Shown: positions 2,301-24,699 of the stretch, piece by piece
How the letters are laid out: the number at the start of each line of letters is the position of its first letter
How positions within the stretch are numbered: position 1 is the stretch's first letter
Origin: Saccostrea echinata
Taxonomy: Eukaryota
Assembly (NCBI RefSeq): GCF_033153115.1
Contig: NW_026889750.1
Coordinates: forward strand, 39,308,001-39,372,000
Reading direction: 5' to 3'
DNA: 64,000 nucleotides
Program-made: the position numbers and the translations under genes
Notes under the pieces: generated by a model
The model's input: only the letters and a program-made list of their open reading frames with translations
The model's database searches: none
What the model was told of the DNA's origin: nothing

Positions 2301-5300
2301 GACAAAAGCACATCGGAAAATTAGTGAGCATATTTTTCCATCTTATTAAGCGTAAATTTCAACGGTTTTATATATTTGAAGAGCTCATATGATTTTAATT
2401 TTTATTTAGATTTTTTTACCGCCCTAAACACACACACAAGTCAAGGAATAATTGAGTTACAAGGAAAAATGTAACGTGATTTTTGATATAAATCACAATG
2501 TATAATCTAATAAGAACATAGCTGCAATAATGTAGCCCTCTACGATTTTTTTTAATCTGATATTTTCAGGAGAGGGCTACAATTCCACTGCATCTCCGTA
2601 ATGGTGCAAATATATTTTTAGATACGGGCGACTGCAAAATAAATTGTTTTTGCATTTAACTTACTTCCAATAAGACGGAATTTTTATTTACTATCAACAA
2701 CATAGCCCTTCATACGCGAAAACCAAGTAAAATAAATCTGCGTGTTTACCAGAGGCCTGTTCAACAGGGCGAACGTTCGCGAGCGCTCGCGAACATATCT
2801 GTTGGAAAGATAAGGAATATTGGCGAGCGCTCGCGAACGTTTGCTCTGTTGAACAGGCCTCAGTTGTTCTGCTCAGCAGCCATGACAGTTCTCGCGTGAT
2901 GTACTGAGACATGCGACAGGACCTATATACTAACGGGATAGGCAACTCTCGCAATATCTCGTAAGTTGCGTGATTTCATAAGTCAATTTTAGTTAAATAT
3001 ATCTCTTTTGCTATTAAATATTTCAGAATAAAATCTTAATTTATCTATCAAAAAATTATTCAAGATTTGTTATTAGCACAGTTTTTACTCCTTATCTTAG
3101 TAGTAATTACGTTTATTTAAAAATCAGTGTGTGTCCCTAATCGGCCGTATTTCCGAGAAATTGTCGATCTCGGTGGTTGTTTACTTAATATCTAGATTAT
3201 TTTATAATATGTGCTTTAAAATTTATTAAATATCCATTCCGATACACAAAAAGAACAGATTACATTAATCAGAAAACAAGCTTTTTACTTGGGAAAAACG
3301 TAGTTAGAAAAACTTGCAGTGTTGTTTGTGCCGTTTTGGGTAAATAAACATGGCGCTGAAGGATTTGCCTATCCCGTTAGTATATATAGGTCCCTGCTTG
3401 CGATTGAAATTTAGAATCACTTTATTAGGTAAATGTTGGTGTATATAAATCTTTGTGTTGTTTGGTATAACTTAACATCGATAAATAAAAGCATCCCACA
3501 TGATATTTTTTCATAAACATTGATATTTATGCTTAAAATAAGGGAAATCCTAATAGGTCCGCTCCCCTAGATCCCGAATTCTCATTGGTTGTCCCAAAAT
3601 AAAATCGATCAAGGTCAGTAAACAAGGCGGATAAATTCAAAATGTGATGTTGACATACACGAAAAATAACCAATATACGGATTGTTCTGTAAATTTTTGG
3701 ATCAATTCATGTTTTGCATAACTACATTTTATGAGTTCAGGTAAGATATGTTAATAAAGTACCCACTAACTGATAATTTGAGCCGAAATCTGTGAGGTAG
3801 AATCACTCCCGCACTTGCACCATTACGGAGATCCTAAGGAGTTGTAGCCCTCTCCCCCCCCCCCCCCCCCAAAAAAAAAATCGGAGAGGGCTACATTATT
3901 GCAGCTAATAAGAACAGTGTCCTGATGATAGAAGAACAGCTTTGTCACAATCCAAAAATTGGAAAATGTTAATAAGTCAAATTCTAGTGAATGTGGTTAT
4001 GGTGGGAAATAAAAGCTGTGGATCACTTTATTTATTTTTCAGAAATTTATACTGTTTTATGCTTAGTAACAGAAAATAATGAACAGGTTCCACTTTTTAT
4101 TTGCATTTTCTATTCAAAGCACCATGTGGCCAATGCTGTTGGACATGAGCAAAGAAGAATGCAAGCGAATATTGAGGAGAATGGAGTTGGAGGCGTACAG
4201 CTCTATTGTTTCAGCTTTCAGAGCACAGGGCGATCTCACAAAAGATAAGAAAAAAATTCTTCAGGATCTTCAGTCCACTTTAAGGTAAATTATGATACTA
4301 TTTCACAGAATTGCAGAAAACAAAAACATCTTTTAAATAAGACAGTGTCTTACTCTTTTTACTTCTCTTTATTGTAGTATCTCAACAGAGAGACACAGAG
4401 CTGAAGTCAGAAGGGCTGTTAATGATGAAAAATTAGCCACCATTGCTGATCAGTACGTTATTGAAATTTTTTCTGCCCCATGGGCTACTTTTGGGCCAAA
4501 ATAGAGGGCAAAGTTTTACACAAGAAATATGAAACTTCTTTATGAGCAAGAAGACTAGAATTTGTAAGCTTGACATTAAGCTTCAGTGTACTTAACAAAT
4601 TGCTGAAATTGTGGTCTTTAAGAAAATAATAGCTTCTAAAAGGGTTTTCATTTATCCACGTTTATTTGCAAGAAAGGTAATTAAACTCAGTTGCGTGTTG
4701 CAGCACTTTTGCTTATTGTAATTTTGGCCTTAATGTAGTGGTTTCTTAAAAAAAGAAACCTTTATGAATTTTGTTTGAATTAAGACTGTGTTTATAATTT
4801 TAAAGCATGTGTGGACCTAGCACAGATGCAGAATGGATGATCGAGGGGAGGAGACTAATTCCTCTGATGCCTCGTCTTGTGCCTCAAACGGCATTCACGG
4901 TGACAGCCAACCAGATGGCTAATCTACAAGCAGAAAAAAATGCAGCTATGCCAAGTCCATCTAGAACAGGCAGTAAAGACTGTAAGAAATAAATGATGTA
5001 CTAAATCAGAATATTTTCAACTTGTCTAACTTGAAGCTAGCATAATGAATTCTTTCAAAATTGCAGTAAGCAGCACCTCCTCTAGTCCACCGACTCCTGT
5101 TAGTGGTACTGTCACCAAGGTAACAAGACCATCCAGCCCAAACTCTAATGTGGTGGTATTGCCAAGTGGAATGTCTATTCACATCAAAGGTATTTTAAAT
5201 TTTCTTTAGACTGATTAAAACTTCATTTTTCATCAGTAAAAATTTCAAATTTAAGATAGTGACATTCACAAAATCTTGTAGGTGGATTAAACACAGAAGA

Positions 5301-8300
5301 TGAGGAAGAATTGCCTGCAAGAAAGAGAAGAAGAAGTCAGTCCTCTTCAGAATCTATTAATATTGTGTCTCCATCAGCTGGTACACAAACTCCAAGGGTC
5401 ACGTATTCCACTACAGCAAGTTCAGCTTCAGGGATGTCCCCTGTCAAAATCACCATCAGCAAGAGTCCCCAAACACGCCCTCAAGTCACATCTTCAACCA
5501 GCCAGTCACAAAAGGTTTGCTCTGTTCAATAGCCAGGGGAAAATTTTGTTGCAAAATTAATATATTTGATGCAAAAAGAAGAATTTTTATGACCATACAG
5601 TGGCCTGCAAAGAATGTCAGCAATCTCACAGATATTAAGTTTTATATGCACATCTATTTAATGATGAAATATAGTTTCAAGTTTTTTGGGTGATAGAAAT
5701 GTTTCTTATTGTCCCCCGCTTTCGCAAAACAAGGGGACATTAAATCTCATTTGTCTGTCACAAAAACTACCACCGTGGTCATAACTTTTGAATGAGAAAA
5801 GAGAGAGCTCTCATATTTCACAAATTTGTACATTACCTCTGACGAGATCTTTGCAAATGTGCGATGGTTTTTGACACCTTGACCTTGAAGTTTGACCTGC
5901 TTTTCAAAAATTTTGACATTGATGATAACATTTGAATGAGAGAAGATAGGGCATTTATCTCTTACATATGCATTACTTGTGACAATCCCTTTCCAAATAT
6001 GTATAATTTTTGAACCCATGACCTTGCCCTGGAAGTTCTGACCTGCTGTAAATCCCTTTTTTTTTTGTGAAAACTTTATTTTTGTGTAATTAAGAAAATC
6101 AGTCTGCTCCCGAAAATTTCATTCTGGCTTATATTTTTATTAGTATAGATTATATACAACAACCAGAGTTCACCAAGATTCTGTCTTGCTTATAAATTGC
6201 AAAAATAAGGTGTCACAAAAATTTTGTGATGTACAGTACTTTTCAAAGATTTTTAAGATTGGTGATGAAAATTTATAATGAGAGAAGATAGGGTGTTCAT
6301 ATTTGGCATGTGCATTACCTGTGACAAGACCTTTCCAAATGTACATATGTACTATGTTTTTTGACCCCATGACCTTAATCTAGAAGTTTGACTTACATAT
6401 CAAAAATGTTTAACTTTGGCTGTAACTTCTGCTCCAGAAGAGACAGGGCTTTCATATTTTTTTCACATACATGTGCATTACTCGTGACGACCTTTTGGAT
6501 AGTATTTTGATATTTGATCTCATGACCTTGATCTTGAAGTTTGATGCCGGTTCAAGAAACTTTGCTGTAACTTTCAAAATTCAAAAATTTAAATCTTTTT
6601 TGTATGATGGACAGCCAGGACACATAGGCAAGACAGTTACAATTTACCATAAATGATTCCATCCCATCCACTAAGACACTGAAAGCAGGAGTCCACAATA
6701 TACTGAATTTGCTTATTAAGTTCTATATGATAAAGGTGTGTGACATAATAACCAGTGACAGTGCTACCTACATGTATCCCTCTACAGGTTATCCTTGTAT
6801 CCAGTTCTGGGCAAGCATCATCATCCAGCATTTTACATCAGAAATCAATCACAGTCCCTGTGGTTAAAACAACCAGTTCTTTGGGAGGAACATCCAATCA
6901 GAAATCTAATATCTTACCAAATTCTGGATCTTCATCCAATGGAAATCTTGGAAACATTGTTACAGTGGCAACTCCCTTGTCATCAACTTCATCTTCAAGT
7001 AAGGAATAAAAGTAGATGACAGAGAATATGAAGTTTTTAGATTAGATCAACAGATACATTTATATCAGATGGATTGTTTATTCGTCAGTAACATTCATCC
7101 TCACTGATGAACAAGCACAGAAACATTATTGACAAGCAAAATAGGGTTAGTTACATGTACTGGTCATCAATTTGGTGCACTTGAGATACTGTAACATACT
7201 TTTTTTCAGCTATAATTCTGTCATTTACTTGATCCTCAGAATAATTATTTAAAGTTAGAATCTACTGTGAAATTCAACCACCGGATATATTTTAAGAAAT
7301 TCAAGCAAAGAGTGAATGATGATAATTATTTACATTGTTGATTATTCTGAAGACATCCTCAGGACATTTCACTTTCACAACTTGGGAGTTTGATTTATGC
7401 TGAACAATTTTCATTACCAGCAATTTTAAATGCATTTTTGATTGATGGGTTTACTAAAACATGCAAGACACTACCATATTTATGTTCATTGTTCTTAATT
7501 AATGCTCTTTTATTTTAAAATATTTATTTACTATATTTATTTTAAACAGTGTATTAAGAGCATGAACATCTAAATGTTTCAATGGTTAGCATTGTGCTTA
7601 GTGTTATGGACCTTCTGCTAATCATGCCTGCAGGCAATTAAACTGCAGATGTTGAAAATACCTATCTACCATGAACTTTGAAAATAATATGTATGGAGCA
7701 AAAATTTTTACCATAATGTCAAATTCAATCAAAAATTGAAAATGTTTTGTTTTACCAAAATAAAATGCACGTAATGAAAAGAAGAAACAAAAGATAAACA
7801 CCAAGGCTTCTTAACATTGTTAAAAATCATTCACATACAAAAAATTTTTTTTAAAAGAATTCACAAGTCTGTGTGCTGCATATTGCATTATTTTATTGCT
7901 CTTCTGTATTTTACAAAATCACTTTCAGACTCTACATCCACAGCTGTCACGACATCAACTATGACCTTCTTGACCCCAACTGTCAGTATTCAGAAACCTC
8001 GCCCAAAAACAGTTCCAAGACAGAGATTTCCTGTGGTAAGAATTTGTAAATCTTTTCTTAAATGAAACAAGCACTTCTTGTGATGATCATTGAAGGAAAA
8101 TGGTGTGGATCAACTACCATAAAATCATTAATTGAAATTATATTTTCATTGACCGTATTTTTCATGTATAGTACATGTATGTATAGATAAACAGGAACTT
8201 GACCCCAGATTTCACCTTTTACAGAGCCAGGGTCAGCAGAAGCCTGGAGTAGTCATACCAATGGGGCCGCAGCCTGTACAGCCCTCTCCCCAGTCTATGC

Positions 8301-11300
8301 AGAACATTCAGATAAAACCTGTTGGCAAGTCCCCCTCCACAATTCAGATTAGGCAGGAGGGAGGTAAGAAAAGCAAATATTAAACTTTTCTTTACTTTTC
8401 AAAAGAAATATTCTGTATGATTTGGAAAAGGAAATTTTCTGGGAAATCATGAATTACATGTAATAGCAAATTATATATCTAGAAAACAAAGAATTGATTC
8501 ATTGGTGAGAGTGGGTTAACCATAAGAATGTGAAGTATCTAGTTAGACAAACTTTAATATGTTACAGGTATGAAGATAATTACTCAGAGTTTCCCAGGGT
8601 CTGGTGGAAGTAAGATTCTACCTAAGCCCACTCAGCTCCCTACCAGTTCTGGTACACCAGTTGTCGTCGTTAGTCCCGGATCATCCACTTCATCAAATGT
8701 CACCATGGTCACCAAACCCATCACATCCATCGGTATTGTAATCAGAATTAAATTTATCATGCCTCATATATATGTAGTAGTGTTCCTGTTGGAATGAGCC
8801 AAGTGTCATGATAATAGTGTTGAATGTTACAGTTAACTGGAGAAAAAGTTTGTATGGTGTTTTGTTTTGAAATATTTAGAAAAATTGTTTTCATTTGAAG
8901 GTCAAGCTGGGACAAAGATTTTGAACATAACGACTCAAGGTGGGAAGGTGATTTCTACAGGAACAAGTCGTGGACCAAATGTTGTAACAGTGAATCCTAA
9001 AACACTCCACTTAACAGCCGTGAAATCAGCAGCGGGAGGAAGTAAGTGTGAATGTCATACCTCTTATAGAAGAGTCTGTTTGGAATATTTTGATGTTTCT
9101 TAGGGTCCAGAGTTTATGTTTGTAAGGGCCAAAAGAGGCAGGTGCCGGGCCCTATTTGCAGTGATAGAAATGTAAGGTTCCCAAAATTACCTATTAAAGG
9201 AAATTCCCAAACGCAATGGGAATTTTTTTGCAATGGGAAAGGCCAAGACCTTTGTTATTAATAAGTAAAAAAAAAATTGAGTCCCCTGTATGTACACCAT
9301 GTATTTTAATTTAATGAGGCAAAGCAATGATTAATAGTTTTTCTTCATCCACTGAAGATGTGTTGGAGATGTTTTAAATGGTGTATTTTTTCCTTTTCTG
9401 TTTTCAAACAACCAATTTACATTATCTTAGGTGGAAAGCCCAATGTTATTGTTGTACAAAAGACCCAGCCCCGGCGACTTTCAGGAATGCCCACTTCTAC
9501 CGCAAGGGGAACAACTGTCATTTCTAGTCCATTTGAAAAGGTCTGTAGTTGTTTATTGTTATTAAGATATTACCCTGTTCTGCTCGTGTTAAAATTTTCT
9601 AAGGCCTAAGGGGTAAATGTTAAATTTAAATGGTATATAGCAGATTTACATGTATGATTGTAATAAAGAAACTTTGTTTAACTTTTCTGACTCAGGAGTT
9701 GGTGAGTTTCCTACAGAAGCAAGACAATACTAAACACATCGTAGTAACATCACCTTCAGGTGGCCAGAGACCAATAGAAAGGAAGGTTATAGTGACCACT
9801 CCAGGGCAGCTGGAGGCCACTAGACAGGTACGTGTACATCTATCATGTACTGTAAAAAAAAACTGTTATCACTTTAAGATATATGGACAGGCATTACTTA
9901 AAAGTGACAGAATATATTTACAATAAATTTGAATTAAACAAATTATAAAAAAACATTAAAGCAAATACTGTCTTCCCTTTTGTTAGAGAGTTCGTATTGA
10001 AAATGCAGAAGGGAAGTTGATCCAAGATCTGATCCATGCAGCAAGTCAGGATTCTGAGGGAGGTGGTGACGTCACTATTAACCTGGACGAAGCTACCCTG
10101 GCTGCTCTGACGGGAAGCACTAGCAGTCAGGTATCAGAGACGGTCACCAGTAAAGGTATGTGACAGTAACACTGCACATTTTTATCTCCTCTTGTAATTT
10201 AAAGTTTATGTGATGTATATTAAGTATTTCATGTCTTAGGTGCCTCAAGTGAAAACCTGCCAAACAATGAATGGTTTGAGTATGATGACAATAACCCCTC
10301 CTTCCAGTCTGGGGTAGACCAGGCTGCTGTACAAGCCCTCATAGAACAACAGGGATCTAACAAACCAAAAGTGACAGTTCAAAGGTTAGTATAAAGTCAG
10401 ATAAGCTCTCAAAGAATAACAGGGATCTATCAAATCAAAGTTGATCATTCAAAGGTTAGTTTAAACTCAGATAAGCCCTTAAAGAATAACAGGGATCTAC
10501 TAAACTAAATGTAACAATTCAAAGGTTAGTATAGACACAGATTGTACTGCTGTACAAGCCATCATAAAACAACAGAGATCTAGCGACTCGGGAGGTTACT
10601 GTAGACTCGGATTATTTGTATAAGTTTGATAAGAGTAAGAGAAATGGATATTAAGGTAGTTGAAAGGGACCTTGGAAGTGGAGAATGAAGGGAGAAGATG
10701 AAGGAGGCAGAAGGGGGACAGTGAGTGATACCCTGAACCCCTCACTGCCTGATCTGTCCCCATGAGTATGTTTATTCATTTACAGGTCTGCCAGTGTGGA
10801 TATTGGGCAGTTATCAGATCAACTCTCACAGCAGCAGTTCTACACAATTGGTATGATATATGTATTTGTTTTTGATTCTAACTAATGAATGATAACTAAG
10901 TACTTAAATATTGAGGTGTGAAAAGTATTTTATCTGGTATGATTTTTCTATTCATTTGAGAAACATTTTAATATTTATATATGCAGAGATTTGGGGGCAT
11001 ATAGTTTTTGGCTTGTCTGTCAAACATGTTTTTGGCCTCATGACCTTGATTTTTGAGTTTGACCTACTTTTGTCAAACTTTAACCTTTACCATAATGTGT
11101 GAATGGTTGGTATTAGGGCTTTCATATTTCACATGAGTATTTCTTTTGCCAAGAGCTATCTCTGGGTACCAACTTTTTTGACCTCATGATCTTGAACTTG
11201 GAGTTTAATCTACTTTTGAAAAACCTTAATTTTGGCCATGAGCTGCCATATGGTGGCAACAATGTTTCACACCCACATCTTTTTTCATGGGAATATTGTA

Positions 11301-14300
11301 GAACAAGCCATGAAGATTCTGAATAATCCAGAACAGAGTGAGGCAATGATGTTGGAAGAGGTAATTGAAGATGCTAAACCAAAAAGCTAGTACAGCACTA
11401 ATCTTACTGTAAATCATTTTTGCATGAGCAGGAACTTTATATAATTATGCCACACAGTATAAAAATCTGCCAGATATACATTTATTAGCTTGTTTAATTT
11501 GCTATTGAGAAGGAAATGGTGTAAAATGTCTTGTGCAGTTAAAAGTTCCATGACCAGCTTCAGTGACACAGCACTGTCAGTGTACAAGAAGTAAAATGTT
11601 TCAATGAAAAGTTAATCGATCTGATTTTATTTTGTTATTGTCTGTATATGAATTTCATTCTCAAATATACAATGTACTTCAATATTTTTAGAGCCAGGAA
11701 TCCACATCAGAAGGGAATGTTGTCATAGAGACAGTAAATACATCACAGAGTTCTGACATTACATCACAGAATGAGTTGGAACAGATAGCTCGTAACCTGA
11801 ACCTCCAAGGGGAGCTGGATCCACAAACAGGGATATTTTACACAGTGACAAATGCAGCTGGTCAGACTGAAACCCGCAGGCTAACAACAGAATCCAAGGT
11901 TGTCACAGAGAGTGCTCCCCAAGGGGAGGCAACCCCAGGCTCCAAAGCATATGATTTGTTAAGCAGTTCCCTGGCTCAGGCACAGATTGACCTGGATCCT
12001 TATCAGTTCATTGAGGAGGATGTACTTTCTGACAAATCTGCAACAGGAAGTCAGGCTGATAGTGGGGTTGTGGGTAAGATAAAACACAACATTCAATTAA
12101 TTTCTTCAGTTAAATTTTAACATGACTGCATATTTTTGTATTATGATGTATAGTAAGAAGATGACCAAGATCAGTGCTGTTGAAAAATACAGATTAAAAT
12201 AATCGATTGAAATTAAATGAATTTTAAGATTTTTAAAAATCAGATTTTTTTCCTGTTTGTGTATTTTCATGAATACATACATCAATCAAATTGCACATTT
12301 GTATTAATGAAACATGTTAATGGGACATTTTCATGTTCTTTGAGTGGATTATTTACAGTATAAGAATTTAATCCTTGCCTGAATTTCCACAGAGATCCCA
12401 TCTTCTGGAGAGGTCTCGGCTGACACAACAATAGAGAATGTGGTGGTGTCTGATAGCAGTGAGCCCACCACTAGTGCCGCCCTCCACACCACCACACTGA
12501 ACACCACCACAATCAGGATCAAACCCGGCAGCAGCTTCATCCCTATACAGGATGTGGCTAAATCTTCTACCATCAATGTTACACAGGAACAGGTAGGACT
12601 TGGGTTTTACTTCATTCATGGTAGTGGATAAAAACTTTAAAAAAAAAAAGCATTGAAATTAATAATTAATTGATTTCAAGTAATTGCATGAGATATTCAG
12701 TTGTCACTGAATATTACAGACTATTATTTGAGATATTTTTGGGTCTGTTGGTTAGACCAGAACAGCTTATGCATTGCTTATGTGTCCATTCCTAGTTTGT
12801 TAAAACAGTTTACATAATTATAGGAATAAGTTTGACCTGATACAAATTTAGAGTACTTCTGGACATGTACATGTTTCAGCCAAACTTGAATTTCAATGTA
12901 CAGTCTTGATAATGTTATTGAAAATAGAATGTAAAAATAGGCTTCTTTGATAATTTCAGTCTGACTAAGTCTGGTATAAATATAGATTACCTCAAAATAT
13001 TTATTAAGGTTATTGAGTTTGCTGTAAATTATACTTTCTGTCAATAAGAAAAGGTTAAAGCTTTAAAGTTATAAATTCATTTTTCTTTTTGTTTGTTTAA
13101 TAGTTTTTATTTTGTTTTTCATTAAAAAAAAAAATGTTGCTTCTTTCTTTGCAGTTTAAAAAGGGGTGTGTTCTCAATTCAGAAAGAAAATTTTAAAAAT
13201 GCTAATGTTTGATCTGATCAATTTTTTTGTAAAATATTATAGGCTGAAATCATAAAAGCTGCCATCAAATCAGAATGGTTAAATCATGAAGTTAAAAATA
13301 AATACATGTATTTTTTTTTTTTTGAATGAATGAATAACATTGTGTTTTGGTGTTATATATGTTATAAGAACATTTTTGATACAGAAAATTATTTCATTTT
13401 AGGTGATTTTCTATTCTGCAACATTATGATAATTATAAACTATTTAGGAACATTAGATTTTTTAAAATATATAAATTATTCTAACTACATAATGATTTAC
13501 CAATAGATAAACAGGTTATCCAGTTATAATTACTGTTATAATTACCCAATTGCACTGTCAACTGAACTAATTGCATGTGATGGTGAGAAGGTAGAGAACT
13601 TGGTACCTGTAATTAGCACCTGCTAGGTAATCAGATGCAGTATCTGCACTTACCAATGGTATTAGTGTGTAATTTGGAGGGTGTCAAGAGTAGGAGGGAG
13701 AACTCATGTAATTGGATTGTGTGCTCAGGCCAGGTATATATAGCTATCCCTCTGGCTAGGCTCATCAATCAGTTCTTCTGGCTTCTAGCACTTCAGACCT
13801 TGTGGAAATATTTTACTGAGAGCAAGAGAAGTTTTGTGAAACTGAAATCATAGGAAAAATTTTTTCCTATCTTTATCAATAATTTCAGGATTGTTTCCCT
13901 TTTTGGGAAAATTATCTGTGATATTTTTTTTTGATTTGTCAATTGAGCAAAGATGAATGGGGCTATAGTGTATGAGAGGGATTATGCGGACCATCATAAT
14001 GTGGACAGGGATAATGGTTATCCCCCTTCAACAGAGCCATCTGTCATGGCCCAGGGCGAGTACCCCCCTCCTTACTTCCCTCCACCCTACACCATGCCAT
14101 CTCAGCCTCCCATGGATTATCATTTCAATAACTCGTATGCTCCTGTGTCCGACTACCAGCAGCAGGAGCAGCCCTCCCAACAGGAGTTCCAGGCTATGCA
14201 TGGTGGCATAGACAGAGTCCACGAGTACAAGATTCAGGATGGTGGTGCCAACATCCACAGACCAGAACCGGTGATGCCAGGAACTATCCCTGTCAACTTC

Positions 14301-17300
14301 AATGAACAAGGTATGATGAGTGGTGGAGTCCAGCAGGGAATGCCACCCATGAATGGAAACTACCCAATGGAGAATTACATCCCTAGAGAAATGAGAGAGA
14401 TGATGGGAAACTTTGAAGCACAGTCACAGAAAAGCCTGGTAGTCCATGAGAAGGCTGGTCGCAATGATGTGGATATATCTGCAGCTGCTGCTCCAGCTGA
14501 TGTTTTCTGTATGGTGGATGGAAGACTCTCCCTACTTAGCAGTACCACCAAGTACAAAGTCACAATAGCAGAAATACAGAGAAGATTGTCTCCCCCTGAG
14601 TGCCTTAATGCTTCACTGCTAGGAGGAGTTCTCAGAAGAGCCAAGTCTAAAAATGGAGGAAGATGTCTGAGAGAGAAGCTGGACAAGATTGGATTGAGTC
14701 TTCCTGCAGGTAGAAGGAAAGCAGCCCAGACAACACTCCTGACATCTCTTGTGGAAGGGGAAGCTGTACGACTTGCAAGGGATTATGGGTATTTGTGCGA
14801 GTCCGAGTTCCCAGCAAGGAAGTGTGCCGAATACAACTGTAAGAAATACCAGACAACAGACCCCCAGGAAAACATGGCAAGGAAGAATATGGTGCTGGCC
14901 ACTAAGCAGATCCTGAAGGAGTTTATGGATATCCTGAATCAGGACCGATCTCCCATTGGAAACTCTCGTCCCCAACCAATCCTGGAGCCTGAGATACAGA
15001 GCTATCTGACCAATTTCAGTCTGATTAGCCATGGTTTTGGATCTCCTGCCATTGTTGCTTCACTTGCTGCAGTTCAAACATACCTGACAGAAGTCCTCAA
15101 GGTCATGGACAAAGGATTTCTCAACGATGGATCGATGCCACCCTCCAAGAAAAGAAAGTTGTAAGAAGGAAAGACGTTCTTTGCTCTGTAAATAAAGTGC
15201 TTTGTGTGACAGTGTCTTGAATGTTGACTTGTTTCCTAGGAAGATATATTGATAACTTTGTGACTTAAGTGCAGATTCCTGTTGCTCACTAAGTTGATGT
15301 TTGTGTTTCCAGTGTTTTTAATCTGTGTTTATAAGGATCTGTAATTCCAGACTCATTGTGATCTTCAATAACTTACAATAGAGATATTTAATATGTACCT
15401 TTTTTCATCAATATTACTTTGTATGTTGTAATTCATTGAATAAATGATTGTAGTATATTTACAGTTGTTTTTGTAGTATTTTGCTATTACACACATTTAG
15501 TTTCGTGTACTTAAAATGGATTTAAAATAAAATGTTAATCCTTTAGATGTTTTAACATTCTGGGTTAAACATACCAAGATGCCTTTATAGAATACCTTTG
15601 CTTATGTTTGCAAGAACTTGCTGACTTTTGTAACCTGGGTCATTACTTGTTACTGGCTTTACCTGGGTCATTACTTGTTACGTGACCTACTGGCTTTTGT
15701 AACCTGGGTCATTACTTGTTACATGACCTACTGACTTTTGTAACCTGGGTCATTACTTGTTACATAATGTACTGGCTTTTGTAACCTGGGTCATTACTTG
15801 TTACATAACCTACTGGCTTTTGTAATCTGGGTCATTACTTGTTACAGTTGAGTTTAGAAGGTGTAGTTCAGGATGACTTTAACACAGAGACTGTAGAAAT
15901 GACGGGCACAACAGACTTCCTGTCCCAGCCAGCGGCCCTGACAGAAGAAGTCCAGTTAGTGATGGATTCTGTCTCGCTCGGAGATCGCACCATTCAGAGC
16001 ACTGAAACTGTCACGGTGGAAACCACACAAACAGTAGATCCGACAGAAGTCAGTCTAGATGAGTTTGTGGTCATGGATAACCCCATCCCAGGTAATATAT
16101 GAGCCATGGTACACATTAAGAAAAAAAATCCTGTTTATCCCAGTCTTGTAGATTTAAATAAGAAAAAGTCTACCTGATATAATACATTTTCTGTTAGCCT
16201 CTAAATACTTAAACCAATTCATATGCATTTATTCCCTCCCAGATTTACATATCGATTGTAGTTTTAAGCATACTTCTATTTTATGCAGGTACTAGTGTAA
16301 GTGAAAGCCACAGTGTTGATCCCTTAAGCAGTTCTGATCCCACGGGCTTGGCAAGATTAGGAAAGAGAAAAAGGAAAGTTCCAGCTGCATTGGAGGATAG
16401 TCCCACCCCCCTGCCTGGTGGGGGCTGGAACAGAGCATGCCTGGGGTAGGGTATTTTTTATGCAGCCTGTTATCAGGAGAATGTTGATTAATTTAATGAT
16501 TTTGAGGAAGTATAGCATGTTAATGAGGTTTTTGGAAGATCAAGATAATGAAACTATTTCAAACATTTAAAATCATTGTGAAGATTGTGATTTTGACTCT
16601 TAGGATAATACAGAAAGTGATGAAATACAGAGGATTAAACAGACATAAAGATGACCTGAATGCCTCCACATGGTTTTTAGAACCAGGTAAGTGCAAGAAT
16701 ATCTTTAACTGTCATAGAACAATTTTAGCTTTAAATATGTGTCATGTGGTTTTATATATATGCATACATAAAAATGATAGTACAGTAAAACTTGTTGAAT
16801 CCGGATGTTGTGCATTCCGGCATGTTGTTCAGTCCGACATAATATTTTAGTCCCTTGAATTTTCTTTATAATTTATGTTTAATAAATGTTGTGCAATCCA
16901 GATCTTGCCTATTCTGTAAACCGGCCGCTAATTAAAGAACTTACTGCTCATAATTAGTACAAATTATCTCCTCTAATCCGGCCACTTATTTTTACCTGTG
17001 CCCGCTGGTCATTAGAGAAGTCTCGCGTGGGGTAATTATTGTCCCGTTAATGATCTATCCTGTATCGACAGTTTAGATTCTAACAAACGTGATAAAAAAA
17101 ATCATTAATGGCTCAAGTAAGGCGAGGAAAGTTGCGTGTAGCATGTCTGTAGAAAAAACTTGGAGACTTATTCATGACCTCCTTTCTACTTTCGTTTTGC
17201 GTGCACGACGTGCAATTCGAATTACTTCCCTTTTTGTCGCTAGTTTACAACGACCAAAGTGACAGAAGATTTTTTTCAATATTCATTACATGTAGAACAT

Positions 17301-18486
17301 TTGAAATTAACAAATACAGTATCTAAATATTCAAACATATTAATTTTAAAAGAAAGAAATTAATTAGGAATCTGTCCCTAACAAAATAATATTTACAGCT
17401 ACGATAAGGTTTTTGATTGTATTTAAGCACTTAACGATTTTCAAATTTGATAAATGAACTAGAGATATTATATTTCGATACTGAATAAAAAACGTAGCAG
17501 AAATTAAAATTCTTAAGAACAAACAGAGTTCAAAACAAATGGAAATAGACGATTTTTTCAAGTGAAACGTAAAAAATGACACATTTGATCAAGTATTTAT
17601 TTACCACTCTTTGTTTATATCTATGTAATTTTTAACTTGCTATAACGGTTCAATTTTCTCTAATCCGGCCAAAAATTTTGGAACCACTGGTCGCCGGATT
17701 AGACAAGTTTTACTGTAAATGGCAATATTTCAACCAAAGAAAAAAAGGAAACTTTTTACAGGCATTTTTATCATGAATATATTAACATCTTCCAATGGCT
17801 TTATTTCTGTAGTGGACCCAGAGGATGCCCCAGATTATTACACAATCATAAAAAATCCTATGGACTTTGGAACAATCAAAAAGAAATTGGAGGTTGGTTA
17901 CATTTCCAGTTCATCTGTTATTAATTGAAGCAGGATTCTATTGAATTTACAAACTGAAAAAGACAAAAATGTAGAGCTTTTCTTAAAAGCTACTATTGTG
18001 TAGGATGATGCAAGGAAATTTTTTTCATACAGATTATATTTCCAAATTGTATATTTCCTGTTACAGAGTCATACTTACTCTGATTATGAAGATTTCCACT
18101 CAGACATGCTGCTAGTTCGAGACAACTGTCGCGTGTACAACCCCCCAGGCAGTGTGGTCCGTAGAGATTGTGATGAGGTGTTTGCTTACTACATGTCAGA
18201 GTACGAAAGAATCCTAGAAAAATGGCAGAAGGTAAAAAAAAAAAACTAAGTCATAATTTGTTCGAATTTTTCACTTTTTCATTTTTGTAAGTTTGTTGCC
18301 TTAACATGTATCAGTCTGAGTGGTTTAAAATCATAATAAAAACATTAATATATCCAGTGTCTTTGTTAATTTACTAAAAATTCATTGTTCTGTTCTTTAT
18401 TTTTTCATTATCTTAACTTTTAGGCTCACATCTCTTCACCCTCCTCCAAGAAACTGAAGTTTGAAAGTAGAAGTCCTAAGATGTGA
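2295..18486 (+). CDS. EMSY: EMSY-like chromatin regulator (N-terminal ENT domain, long S/T/V-rich middle, C-terminal bromodomain), 25 coding exons, ~1205 aa
   Basis: Phase-consistent GT-AG exons: 2295-2323, 4120-4284, 4378-4452, 4806-4981, 5067-5189, 5282-5514, 6788-6998, 7929-8035, 8225-8363, 8568-8732, 8901-9041, 9431-9540, 9696-9827, 9987-10155, 10240-10384, 10786-10850, 11302-11360, 11692-12073, 12393-12592, 15848-16091, 16289-16445, 16604-16686, 17813-17892, 18067-18231, 18424-18486 (3618 nt, ends TGA). ENT domain: [44 protein letters not shown]...[18 protein letters not shown]...[31 protein letters not shown]-like motifs: [38 protein letters not shown]. The first exon ([10 protein letters not shown]) is less certain; ATG 4124 is an alternative start. 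Confidence 0.9.
2753..2860. mobile_element. 108-bp hairpin MITE, PIF/Harbinger-like
   Basis: AGGCCTGTTCAACAG.GC.AACGTTCGCGAGCGCTCGC arm inverted at the other end; CAG flanks both sides. Confidence 0.75.
2917..3396. mobile_element. Non-autonomous TIR element, 7-bp TSD (P-like), copy 2, inverted relative to 487-984
   Basis: Same TIRs; the internal sequence is the reverse complement of 487-984. Flanks CATGCGA/CTTGCGA (one mismatch). Confidence 0.85.
5705..6570 (+). mobile_element. Degenerate Helentron-associated (HINE-like) element with internal tandem units
   Basis: Begins TTATTGTCCCCCGCT...GGGGAC hairpin; repeated TGACCTTGA(C/A)C..GAAGTTTGACCT and GGCCATAACTT-like units, same family as 45010-46180. 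Confidence 0.55.
10324..10582 (+). repeat. 70-bp tandem repeat built from EMSY exon 15 3' end and splice donor
   Basis: AGGGATCTA at 10351/10421/10491; TTCAAAG|GTTAGT donors at 10385/10455/10525; re-copy of exon sequence at 10547-10582. Confidence 0.85.
10980..11283 (+). mobile_element. Short HINE-like element ending just upstream of the EMSY exon 17 acceptor
   Basis: GGGGCATATAGTTTTTGG start, GACCTTGA..GAGTTTGACCTACTTTT units, end GTTTCACACCCACATCTTTT resembling 46159-46180. Confidence 0.55.
13735..13774 (+). promoter_or_regulatory. Candidate core promoter of nested TFAP2 gene (TATA + Inr)
   Basis: TATATATAG at 13735-13743 followed ~30-35 nt later by TCAGTT (13769-13774, invertebrate Inr consensus TCAKTY), ~180 nt upstream of the ATG. 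Confidence 0.55.
13953..15164 (+). CDS. TFAP2: Intronless AP-2 (TFAP2) family transcription factor, 403 aa, nested in EMSY intron 19
   Basis: Single ORF with PY activation motif [11 protein letters not shown] and AP-2 basic/helix-span-helix domain [76 protein letters not shown]...[18 protein letters not shown]...[13 protein letters not shown]. The paralog letter cannot be assigned. Confidence 0.93.
15191..15531 (+). terminator. Candidate polyadenylation signals of nested TFAP2 gene
   Basis: AATAAA at 15191, 15439 (followed by a GT/T-rich tract ~15464-15485) and 15526. Confidence 0.5.
15621..15847 (+). repeat. 41-bp tandem repeat (6 copies) terminating in the EMSY exon 20 acceptor
   Basis: A(C/T)CTGGGTCATTACTTGTTAC at 15633, 15661, 15702, 15743, 15784 and 15825; the last copy ends ...TTACTTGTTACAG|. 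Confidence 0.9.
16420..18231 (+). other. Bromodomain-encoding exons of the EMSY-like gene
   Basis: Spliced translation reads ACLGIIQKVMK...[73 protein letters not shown]. It has the canonical F..PV...APDYY..IK.PMD and NC..YN (acetyl-lysine-binding Asn) motifs. Confidence 0.9.
16783..17715. mobile_element. Tc1/mariner (pogo-like) MITE in EMSY intron 22
   Basis: TA|CAGTAAAACTTGT..AATCCGG ... CCGGATTAGACAAGTTTTACTG|TA. Confidence 0.8.
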
Positions 18487-21205: not shown

Positions 21206-24200
21206 ATGGGCAAAAATAAAGGGGGACGGCATCAACCACCGCAGACACGCCAGAGGAAACAAAAACAATCGGAAAGCAATGACGATCTTGAAAAGCAAAA
21301 TAAAACAGGGACAAAACCTAACCTTGGTAGAAAGAATAAAAATGATCAATCACAGAATAATAAAATGATAATTTGGACTATTGTATTCGTATTGGTAATA
21401 TCAGGTGCAACTGTTTACATGCGCTACCAAATGTACCTACAGGAGCTAGTTGTTACCCCACTCAATGTACCAAAAATGATTTCACAGAATGTGTCAACTT
21501 CTATGGTTAACCCTGAAAAGTTTTGGGGAACCTATCGATCGAATCTATATTTTGGCCTTAAAACACGTTCTCCAACATCCCCTGTGGTAGGATTGATGTG
21601 GTTAGAGCAGTCAGGAAGTTTGGAGATTCGGCATTGGTGTAGTCAGGATGACAGATTGCCACAGTATGGATGGCTCAAACATGATGGGACAAATTTTGGT
21701 ATCCAAGATGTAGTAGAGAAACATTTCAATGTAACAACATCTTTTGTCAAACAGCCAGGAGGAGAACATGGTGGGGACTGGACAGCTCGTATTTCAGCAA
21801 TTCCCAAAGTAAGATGTAATACTAATCAGGCAACACATACTATCTGATATGATAAGTATCTTCCATAACTTACATATTCTGGCTCCAGAGGCATAAAACT
21901 TTGAGGATCTCACTTTTGCATTAACCAAAATACTTTTTCATGTGAAAAGAGAGATATGGATCCAAAATGAGTTCCTCAAAGTGTTATGGCCCTGGAGTCA
22001 GATGTTTATATTGTCCTTTCATGTAAAGTATTAACTAGGAAAATATCATTAACCAAAAAAAAAAAAATGCTCCTAGCCTTTACTTTAGCAAAATATGCCA
22101 TCAGAATGATAAAATATAGCAAGAGATGATATTACTGGATGACAGATAACATGAAAATTGTCTCACAAAATTTATGTGGATACCAAACAGTATAGGTTAT
22201 ATTAATACATCAAAATAAATGGCATTTTACTTCATTTCACAATGCAGTGTTGGTCAAATGCAGTGGAATAAATGTTAATCAAACATGAATACATGTATGT
22301 TATATACTGTTTATATATTTGACATTCAGTATGGTATAATAATTAAACATAATGTGTACCTGAGGGTAAAAGCTGAAATTGTCACCCTTCAAAAAGTCAT
22401 TGCACTGTTTGCATTAGCCAAGGATTCTATGATGAGAGTTTGTCAAGGTGTGAACATTTTAACTCTTACTTATCCTTACTTACATGTTTATGGCACACAT
22501 TTAATAAATTTGACATAACATGTTCTTTCCAATTGCCTTGAAAATGGAAGGCTAAGGAGAGGGTAGTGTTATGGAAACTTTGACCTTGCATGTACATGTA
22601 CACTAGTAAATGGATGCATTAGTGTTATAATTAATGATCAATGTTTGCTTTGACAAAAAAATGATATTAAAACATGTATTTTGCATACATTTTTATTTCA
22701 AAATGTATGTCCTAGAATGATCATTAGCTGTCACTTATTTTAATTACTTTTGATAGATATTTCTAAAGTTTTCCATTTCAGTTTTAATTATTTATTTTCT
22801 ATTTTTCAGGATGTCAACAGACCTGTTTTAGTATCTCTCATGTTTTATATTGCCTTAGATGGACAAGGCACACTGAATTCGAACATAGCGAGGAACAGGA
22901 TGGAGGTAGTCAGCGGACAATCTCTTGAGCTTGGCAACTTTAAGTTGTCATTCCCAAAAGCCAGGAAAGGTGTAGGAGTTAAATACAACCATCTTATCTC
23001 ATATGCGTCTAGGCTTGACAAGCTTAAAGATTTATTACAAAATTCTCTGAGGACTGATAGCTTTGATAAAGGAAGAACAGTTCCGTACCTTACTTTAGCA
23101 GGGCGTCTACTTCCAAGGGATAGCCCAAGTCCAAATTTTATGGTCCACCAGGTTACAGCACAATTACCATTAGAAATGGAGGTTGTGTTTGAATCAGGGA
23201 GCAATTATGATCGCCATGATTCCCTCCAAGGTGAATTGTACACACACAAACTTGAAAAATTCTCAAAAAGTTTTGACAATAGATTCTCTGAAGTTTTCAA
23301 TTTGGAAAATAAAAGATACAATGAACATGAAATTGCTTTTGCAAAAGCTGCACTGAGCAATATGATAGGCAGCATTGGATATTTTTATGGCTCTTCCATA
23401 GTCCAATCAAAGTACAACAAAGAGCCTGTTTCTTATTGGCCTGCTCCTCTATACACAGCAGTACCTTCCAGATCCTTCTTTCCAAGAGGATTTTTGTGGG
23501 ATGAGGGTTTCCACAATCTTCTTATAAGTCAGTGGGATCCTAATATAGCAAAAGATATTATTGCTCACTGGTTGGATTTACTTAATGTTGAAGGATGGAT
23601 TCCAAGAGAGCAGATTCTTGGTGTAGAGGCCAGAGCCAGAGTTCCAGATGAGTTTGTAGTTCAGAGAAATGAGAATGCCAATCCACCGACTTTATTTTTA
23701 CCACTTCAACGTTTAATCAAAGACATGATAACCAGCCATGATCCACTGGACAAACAGTTCTTGAAAACAGTGTTTCCTAGATTGCAAAAGTGGTTTAGTT
23801 GGTTTAACACAACACAAGTAGGAAGTGAGCCTTTGACTTACTACTGGAGAGGGAGAGATGATAAGACAAATAAAGAATTAAATCCTAAAACTCTAACATC
23901 TGGCTTGGATGACTATCCTCGAGCATCTCACCCTAACACAAAGGAAAGACATGTAGATCTAAGGTGCTGGATGGCTTTGGCTTCAGGAATTCTTGCCGAC
24001 ATTGCAAAGGAGCTTGGAGAGAATGGGAAGGAATATGAGGCTACACACAAGGTTCTGACTGATAATGGTCTCCTGGACAAACTGCACTGGTCACCAAAAA
24101 AAGAACGTTACTGTGATTATGGACTCCATTCAGATCGAGTTCTTCTAGTGAAACCAAAACCACCAAAAAATTTACAGCCAGGACAACCCTTCAATCAAGA

Positions 24201-24699
24201 GAAGATCAGGGAGGTGAAGACACCTCCCCAGATGCAGTTTGTTGAGTCTTTTGGATATGTTTCTCTATTTCCGCTAATGTTAAGAATAGTAGAGCCAAGC
24301 TCTTTAAAACTTTATAAAATTTTGAGTGATCTCACTAATACAGAATTGCTGTGGACTAATTATGGACTTCGATCTCTAGCTAGGAATGCTCCTCAATATC
24401 AAAAAAGAAACACAGAACATGACCCTCCATATTGGAGAGGGGCTATCTGGATCAATATGAACTACCTTACTCTAAGTGCTTTGCATCACTATTCGAACAC
24501 TCCTGGTCCATATCAACAGTTAGCACAGGGAATATATAAGGATTTGCGTGCAAATATAGTCAATAATATAATAAAAGAATATTATAGGACAGGCTACATT
24601 TATGAACAGTATAATGATAAAACAGGTGAGGGTAAAGGAAGTCATCCATTTACAGGATGGTCAGCTCTGGTTGTACTAATAATGGCAGAAAAATATTAG
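21206..24699 (+). CDS. MOGS: Mannosyl-oligosaccharide glucosidase (ER alpha-glucosidase I, GH63), 2 coding exons, ~830 aa
   Basis: Exons 21206-21808 and 22810-24699, phase-0 GT-AG intron. Basic N-tail + TM (MIIWTIVFVLVISGATVYM), FWGTYRSNLYFGLKTRSP, GGEHGGDW, AVPSRSFFPRGFLWDEGFH, GWIPREQILG, ANPPTLFL, TLTSGLDDYPRASHP, YWRGAIWINMNYL, HPFTGWSALV. Confidence 0.96.
21876..22004. repeat. Short hairpin MITE-like element in the MOGS intron
   Basis: TCTGGCTCCAG.GGCATAA.ACTTTGAGGA.CTCA ... TGAGTTCCTCAAAGTGTTATGGCCCTGGAGTCAGA. Confidence 0.6.

Follow-up and report, generated by a model that had tools for sequence, protein, structure and literature searches.

A nested AP-2 gene in the window

The stretch of DNA analysed here (the window) comprises 64,000 nucleotides of the oyster Saccostrea echinata (assembly GCF_033153115.1, contig NW_026889750.1, positions 39,308,001 to 39,372,000 of the forward strand), and coordinates refer to it unless another contig is named. 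It holds a gene of the AP-2 (TFAP2) transcription factor family, denoted here AP-2A, which lies on the plus strand inside an intron of an EMSY-like gene of the same orientation. The coding sequence of AP-2A spans positions 13953-15164 of the plus strand and consists of one coding exon of 403 codons plus a stop. Its open reading frame (ORF) is uninterrupted and begins with ATG, with an in-frame stop codon two codons upstream of this start. The coding sequence has a G+C content of 48%, against 29-37% in the adjoining 1-kb bins. The protein is already present in RefSeq/NCBI and UniRef (P0251), and its orthologue in Saccostrea cucullata carries the name 'AP-2-alpha-like'.

The Pfam TF_AP-2 profile (PF03299) matches residues 185-380 with an E-value of 9.1e-73 over profile positions 1-196 of 197, which means that the domain is full length. 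An earlier note on this DNA, made from the letters alone, had described an intact, uninterrupted AP-2 ORF of 403 residues, and both the ORF and its complete domain bear this out. Residues 180-392 (213 residues covering the basic and helix-span-helix parts) align end to end and without notable gaps with human AP-2alpha (8j0k, E 1.5e-100), and an end-to-end alignment of the same residues is also obtained with the solved DNA-binding/dimerisation domain of human AP-2beta. The N-terminal region is rich in Pro and Gln and contains PPPY, a form of the PPxY activation motif, twice at residues 38-46, within the segment 36-46; PPPY is found likewise in canonical mollusc and vertebrate AP-2 proteins. AP-2A belongs to the TFAP2 family by each of the sequence criteria examined. 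As both the domain and PPxY have been kept, the predicted protein has the two halves that make up a working AP-2 factor. With PPxY and the basic/helix-span-helix parts intact, and with a domain about 75% identical to that of the crystallised AP-2alpha, AP-2A should bind GCC-N3-GGC-type sites as a dimer.

The protein ends in a clade-specific basic tail that terminates in KKRKL (positions 15126-15161 of the plus strand, residues 392-403). This tail is present in all oyster clade-A orthologues (the clades are described below), in which it is 92-100% conserved, and protein comparison did not find it in clade B, in the mussel and pearl-oyster paralogues or in canonical AP-2. Its composition resembles that of a classical monopartite nuclear localisation signal.

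The host intron (12593-15847, plus strand) encloses the whole of AP-2A. It begins with GT at 12593 and ends with AG at 15846-15847, and both adjoining exons are in phase 0. The EMSY-like exon directly upstream (12392-12592, plus strand) ends in ...INVTQEQ, and the one directly downstream (15848-16099, plus strand) begins with LSLEGVV.... In the EMSY-like protein of S. cucullata (P0252) the corresponding residues, ...INVTQEQ|LGLEGVV..., are contiguous exactly over the junction 12592|15848. Residues 876-945 of this protein match positions 12392-12601 at 95.7% identity, the exon stopping at the GT donor after 12592, and residues 942-1031 match the downstream exon at 90% identity; over the exons of the host that were compared, identity is 90-100%. 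The EMSY protein of Pinctada (P0213) is colinear along positions 4124-17898, its residues 919-973 corresponding to 12419-12592 and its residues 990-1059 to 15875-16093. Since orthologous EMSY proteins run uninterrupted across 12592|15848 and the intron is bounded by GT and AG in phase 0, AP-2A lies wholly within a late EMSY intron, on the same strand. The same-strand nesting between 12593 and 15847 reported in the earlier note therefore stands, and its label 'intron 19' is roughly right, the exon count giving the 18th or 19th coding intron.

The identity of the host was established from its ENT domain, which is of the EMSY type. The exons for this domain lie at 4124-4447 of the plus strand (ORF pieces 4070-4285 and 4337-4501), with a Pfam ENT E-value of 3e-14, and the ENT piece matches the EMSY structure 1uz3 of the PDB (E 4e-19). 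When one exon of the host served as query in phmmer, full-length proteins extending from an ENT domain to a bromodomain were retrieved, and these are named 'BRCA2-interacting transcriptional repressor EMSY-like' in their sources.

Other AP-2 loci of the genome

A six-frame Pfam search of the genome revealed three AP-2 loci. The domain is uninterrupted in the window and on contig C54, and it is split on contig C60. The C60 locus, which we treated, like the EMSY host, exon by exon and by means of database proteins (P0145, P0252 and P0213), is the canonical TFAP2 gene. Its coding sequence is split among seven exons within about 13 kb, which encode residues 1-54, 54-210, 210-231, 231-298, 298-339, 339-385 and 386-486. 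The S. echinata protein P0145 ('AP-2-epsilon-like isoform X1') matches these exons at 92-100% identity, four of the seven at 100%. A multi-exon TFAP2 gene, which the earlier note had proposed to look for elsewhere in the genome, is thus found on C60. AP-2A is not the only TFAP2 gene of the genome, nor are the TFAP2 genes of molluscs intronless throughout. The AP-2A ORF spans the equivalents of all six canonical coding-intron sites, and all six introns are absent from it.

The third locus, paralogue B, is an intronless gene of 443 codons on the minus strand of C54 (C54:55909570-55910901). It is intergenic, with a BTB/Kelch-like gene on one side and a TLDc-like gene on the other, both neighbours having been identified by eye from the translations of their ORFs. 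As for relatives elsewhere, a scan of metagenomes gave a single match, an exon-like fragment of a multi-exon AP-2 gene in an unrelated contig.

An old clade of bivalve paralogues

A tree of 55 AP-2 proteins was computed with IQ-TREE under a mixture model and rooted on deuterostomes. In this tree the canonical AP-2 genes follow the species tree, with arthropods branching first, then nemerteans, the brachiopod and the annelid, and then cephalopods, gastropods and bivalves. Short bivalve paralogues of 400-446 residues fall inside the pteriomorph clade (support 100/100), and the canonical gene of Pecten is placed outside them (98/89). The gene of the window belongs to an oyster clade A (100/100) together with S. 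cucullata P0001 (98% identity), P0002, which is probably from Crassostrea, and O. edulis XP_048746377.2. The sister of clade A is oyster clade B (100/100), which comprises the C54 copy, C. gigas K1Q9B2, a C. angulata sequence and O. edulis P0045. Pearl-oyster paralogues come next (100/99; Pinctada P0010), and the mussel group is represented by Mytilus P0026 and P0031. In a smaller tree of 28 rows all four derived groups form one clade (99/98). The stem of this clade is long (0.2-0.4 changes per site), whereas the canonical branches are very short.

As the derived paralogues form a single long-stem clade inside the pteriomorph canonical TFAP2 genes, the AP-2A copy is, on the phylogenetic evidence, old and not recent, its clade being common to mussels and pearl oysters. 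The possibility of a young retrogene was rejected for this reason. The earlier note had called for an AP-2 domain tree across molluscs and spiralians; the protein tree obtained here places AP-2A on a branch from within canonical pteriomorph TFAP2.

A far deeper origin can also be envisaged, namely an intronless AP-2 lineage older than the molluscs that survived in some bivalves only, and the long stem could in principle be read as a mark of such age. We consider this very improbable. The derived clade sits within Pteriomorphia while the canonical genes track the species tree, and an approximately unbiased (AU) test on the 28 rows under LG+G4 rejects a placement outside the canonical mollusc genes: a tree that holds these genes together to the exclusion of the derived ones is worse by 63.9 log-likelihood units (p-AU 4e-5). 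Moreover, the 120 best matches included no member of the derived clade from gastropods, cephalopods or other spiralians.

Selective constraint

Substitutions were counted between the two in-genome paralogues A and B only. The proportion of synonymous differences (pS) is 0.78-0.80, and at this level of saturation no finite dS or dN/dS can be given; the proportion of nonsynonymous differences (pN) amounts to 0.12 within the domain, against 0.45 for the N-terminal part. Among oyster A orthologues the N-terminal part is 71-95% identical and the domain 95-100%. All eight differences between AP-2A and its S. cucullata orthologue fall in residues 4-139. Saturated synonymous sites combined with a conserved domain, and differences confined to the N-terminal part, are the pattern of a constrained, functional gene, and judged by its sequence AP-2A is one. 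The proposal in the earlier note that this is an extra AP-2 paralogue, retroposed or stripped of its introns and kept under selection, is supported by the multi-exon parent on C60, the absence of the six introns, the phylogenetic nesting and the strong constraint.

The same data speak to the idea that AP-2A might be a decaying or non-functional retrocopy with a chance ORF, or else an exon used only in EMSY transcripts. This is the most improbable of the explanations considered. A frame of 403 codons stays open within intron DNA of 30-35% G+C, and orthologues of the same length, so strongly conserved in their domain, occur in at least three oyster genera. The differences from the sister species spare the AP-2 domain entirely, and the protein has been conserved between A and B while their synonymous sites became saturated. 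The stop codon just upstream of the ATG also argues against this idea, and the AP-2A region is left out of EMSY models from other species.

Linkage of AP-2A and EMSY in other bivalves

The lengths of the source contigs given with database proteins were compared as a proxy for linkage; they indicate co-location, not nesting. By this measure AP-2A and the EMSY-like gene are located together on a scaffold of 1,124,310 bp in S. cucullata and on a chromosome of 75,578,129 bp in O. edulis. In Pinctada imbricata, the AP-2 paralogue and EMSY are on different chromosomes, of 63,253,413 bp and 71,201,966 bp, respectively. The EMSY synteny in other bivalves suggested for checking in the earlier note is thus seen at the level of co-location in the two oysters and is absent from the pearl oyster. 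Given the co-location in S. cucullata and O. edulis, the separation in Pinctada and the location of paralogue B elsewhere in the genome, the association with EMSY looks specific to the oyster copy A. The arrangement probably extends across the oyster family and dates from there rather than from the origin of the paralogue.

Of the oyster clade-A proteins, those of Saccostrea and Ostrea have NCBI names. The cluster of P0002, a protein 86% identical to AP-2A and probably its Crassostrea orthologue, has 190 members, and no NCBI-named member was present among the 40 members that were read. Some Crassostrea annotations may lack the nested AP-2 gene.

The host gene and its surroundings

At its 3' end the host gene has bromodomain exons, recognised by a profile match at 17719-18246 of the plus strand. 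According to precomputed Pfam labels, EMSY-like proteins with both an ENT domain and a bromodomain occur in molluscs, annelids, a brachiopod, nemerteans, hemichordates, amphioxus, echinoderms and a centipede, and the vertebrate and insect EMSY proteins have the ENT domain only. With such a spread over many phyla, the bromodomain looks ancestral to EMSY and lost in some lineages, and not an oyster novelty.

The last 186 nucleotides of the host intron, up to the acceptor, are made of a 41-bp tandem repeat (15661-15846, plus strand) of 4.5 copies with 93% matches. The final repeat unit provides the ...CTTGTTACAG acceptor (AG 15846-15847), near-copies of which are found in the earlier units. The next gene downstream, at 21206-24699 of the plus strand, encodes a glycoside hydrolase of family 63 of the mannosyl-oligosaccharide glucosidase type; the two open pieces that encode it, of 213 and 649 residues, are unusually long.

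Promoter and polyadenylation motifs

A putative core promoter of AP-2A, identified by motif matches, comprises TATATATA at 13735-13742 and an initiator (Inr)-like TCAGTTC at 13769-13775 of the plus strand. It is located in a local rise of G+C, about 180-220 nucleotides upstream of the ATG. TATA+Inr composites on the plus strand number one in the 1.36 kb upstream of the AP-2A ORF and 12 in the whole window. No upstream ATG is present in 13771-13952, between the Inr and the start codon, and the start codon has an A at position -3. Downstream of the coding sequence, three AATAAA matches on the plus strand (starting at 15191, 15439 and 15526, together 15191-15531) mark a presumed 3' untranslated region (UTR). 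As sequence matches, the TATA/Inr elements are present where the earlier note had placed them, and the AATAAA signals that it mentioned are present too.

Upstream of both paralogues, A and B, a TATA-like element and TAAT-type motifs occur at comparable offsets. A local alignment of their upstream regions gave a score of 28 against a shuffle mean of 24.5, a value reached by 42 of 300 shuffles and hence not significant. The two regions share 13 heptamers at the same offset, whereas shuffled sequences share 6 on average and shifted controls at most 8; 30 of 500 shuffles reach 13, and the shared heptamers are mostly A+T-rich. The similarity between the two promoter regions is only a hint.

It is tempting to speculate that AP-2A acts in early embryos or in the germline under the control of a compact TATA promoter, and that transcription of the guest on the same strand, together with its poly(A) sites, modulates the production of full-length EMSY mRNA with its bromodomain. 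This reading is compatible with the origin of the gene that we favour below, and we regard it as doubtful but worth stating. It draws on the TATA+Inr composite 218 nucleotides 5' of the ATG, on the leader free of upstream ATGs and on the position of the three AATAAA sites, which are in the host intron and 5' of the bromodomain exons. However, six TATAWAW matches are present in the 1.36 kb upstream of AP-2A, and A+T-rich DNA commonly holds TATA-like strings. In a 454 transcriptome of Crassostrea angulata covering eight developmental stages, a contig annotated as 'Transcription factor AP-2 alpha' is among the most abundant sequences (PMC3428355). The annotation of this contig derives from a weak match to mouse (E 7e-09; PMC3428355), and the contig could correspond to the canonical gene, to A or to B. 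An early-zygotic or germline role of AP-2A is speculation.

One might go further and imagine the whole derived clade as a pteriomorph-specific regulator unlike canonical TFAP2, for instance one that is highly expressed in early embryos, with oyster A and EMSY forming a conserved pair of guest and host in which transcription and polyadenylation of the guest gate the bromodomain exons. We deem this wider proposal improbable.

Origin of the intronless paralogues

The explanation that we favour, to which we assign a probability of roughly 0.78, is that AP-2A is a functional, lineage-specific AP-2 gene, most likely derived from canonical TFAP2 by retroposition early in pteriomorph history and later duplicated. 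That all six coding introns are gone at once points to retroposition of a spliced mRNA, a process whose classical signature is that all introns disappear together. In this scenario, the spliced mRNA of the seven-exon canonical gene would have been retroposed in an early pteriomorph bivalve, later than the branching of the scallop lineage but earlier than the separation of mussels from oysters. The copy without introns would then have gained a promoter of its own and evolved fast at first. In the oyster lineage, a duplication would have generated A, now in the window, and B, now on C54, before Ostrea, Crassostrea and Saccostrea diverged, and both copies would have been under strong purifying selection since. 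The product of AP-2A would bind GCC-N3-GGC-type (GCCNNNGGC) sites as a dimer, possibly together with canonical AP-2, and activate transcription.

Several points weigh against this explanation. Reading of positions 12400-16200, in which no dedicated repeat search was included, showed no A-tract after any AATAAA and no obvious target-site duplication. Such scars are expected to be missing after an event several hundred million years old, and their absence is uninformative about origin; in their absence, retroposition is a mechanism that we infer. Regarding the mussel and pearl-oyster members, the sole sign that suggests their intronlessness is the presence of full-length ORF calls on long ENA/JGI contigs (12-226 kb). 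The group submitted to the AU test had been named after the tree was seen, and the model of that test was LG+G4. Lastly, the independent promoter and the UTR structure of AP-2A are putative, being described at the level of motifs, its expression is presumed, and an intron may be present in the 5' UTR.

Alternatively, the canonical gene might have been duplicated at the DNA level, and its six coding introns lost later, either stepwise or by gene conversion with cDNA. The lack of a visible poly(A) remnant or target-site duplication fits this possibility, as do the upstream motifs that A and B have in common, which would imply that similar promoters were copied or rebuilt at the A/B split. Nevertheless, both unlinked oyster copies are devoid of all six introns while the canonical gene retains every one of them, no intermediate with some of the introns was found among the matches, and the paralogues are on contigs other than that of the parent. 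Together with the intron-loss signature mentioned above, this makes a DNA-level duplication unlikely, and retroposition remains the explanation that we prefer. Capture by a mobile element was also considered as a source of the gene and was rejected, both flanks of the AP-2A ORF being single-copy in the genome.

Significance and comparison with known systems

AP-2 factors are key developmental regulators, with roles in the ectoderm and neural crest of vertebrates and in the germline of several animals. Most invertebrates are thought to hold a single AP-2 gene. Oysters hold three, two of which come from an old intronless offshoot common to mussels and pearl oysters. This is a defined, lineage-specific expansion of a transcription factor family that lends itself to evo-devo studies of bivalve development. 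The locus also provides a clean example for annotation, as a gene nested on the same strand is liable to be missed or to be fused with its host. No new mechanism is involved, since the birth of retrogenes, their duplication and their nesting in introns are all well known. As we found no paper on the bivalve AP-2 paralogue clade or on an AP-2 retrogene, the evolutionary reading may be new, albeit as an instance of well-known processes.

Compared with canonical TFAP2 (vertebrate TFAP2A-E and the oyster 'AP-2-epsilon-like' proteins P0145/P0139), AP-2A has the same full-length Pfam domain, in which identity is about 80% with the canonical protein of oysters and about 75% with AP-2alpha, and its N-terminal region, rich in Pro and Gln, likewise keeps a PPxY motif. 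It differs in having one coding exon instead of seven and 403 residues instead of 486, in an N-terminal part that is only about 25-30% identical, and in its new, conserved C-terminal tail and long stem branch. Paralogue B (C54; C. gigas K1Q9B2, 'Transcription factor AP-2 alpha'; O. edulis P0045) resembles AP-2A in its length and in lacking introns, and it falls in the same derived clade; identity between the two is 55% over the whole protein and about 80% over the domain. Unlike A, B is not in EMSY, does not have the KKRKL tail and has a degenerate PY motif.

In mammals and Drosophila, functional retrogenes within host introns are known as a general class. As an old, retro-derived paralogue AP-2A fits this class, and it shares with its members an intronless coding sequence, a multi-exon parent elsewhere in the genome, an unrelated host gene and purifying selection. 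It departs from the class in being very old and devoid of poly(A) and target-site-duplication scars, in lying on the same strand as its host and in having itself been duplicated, and it is known here from its sequence.

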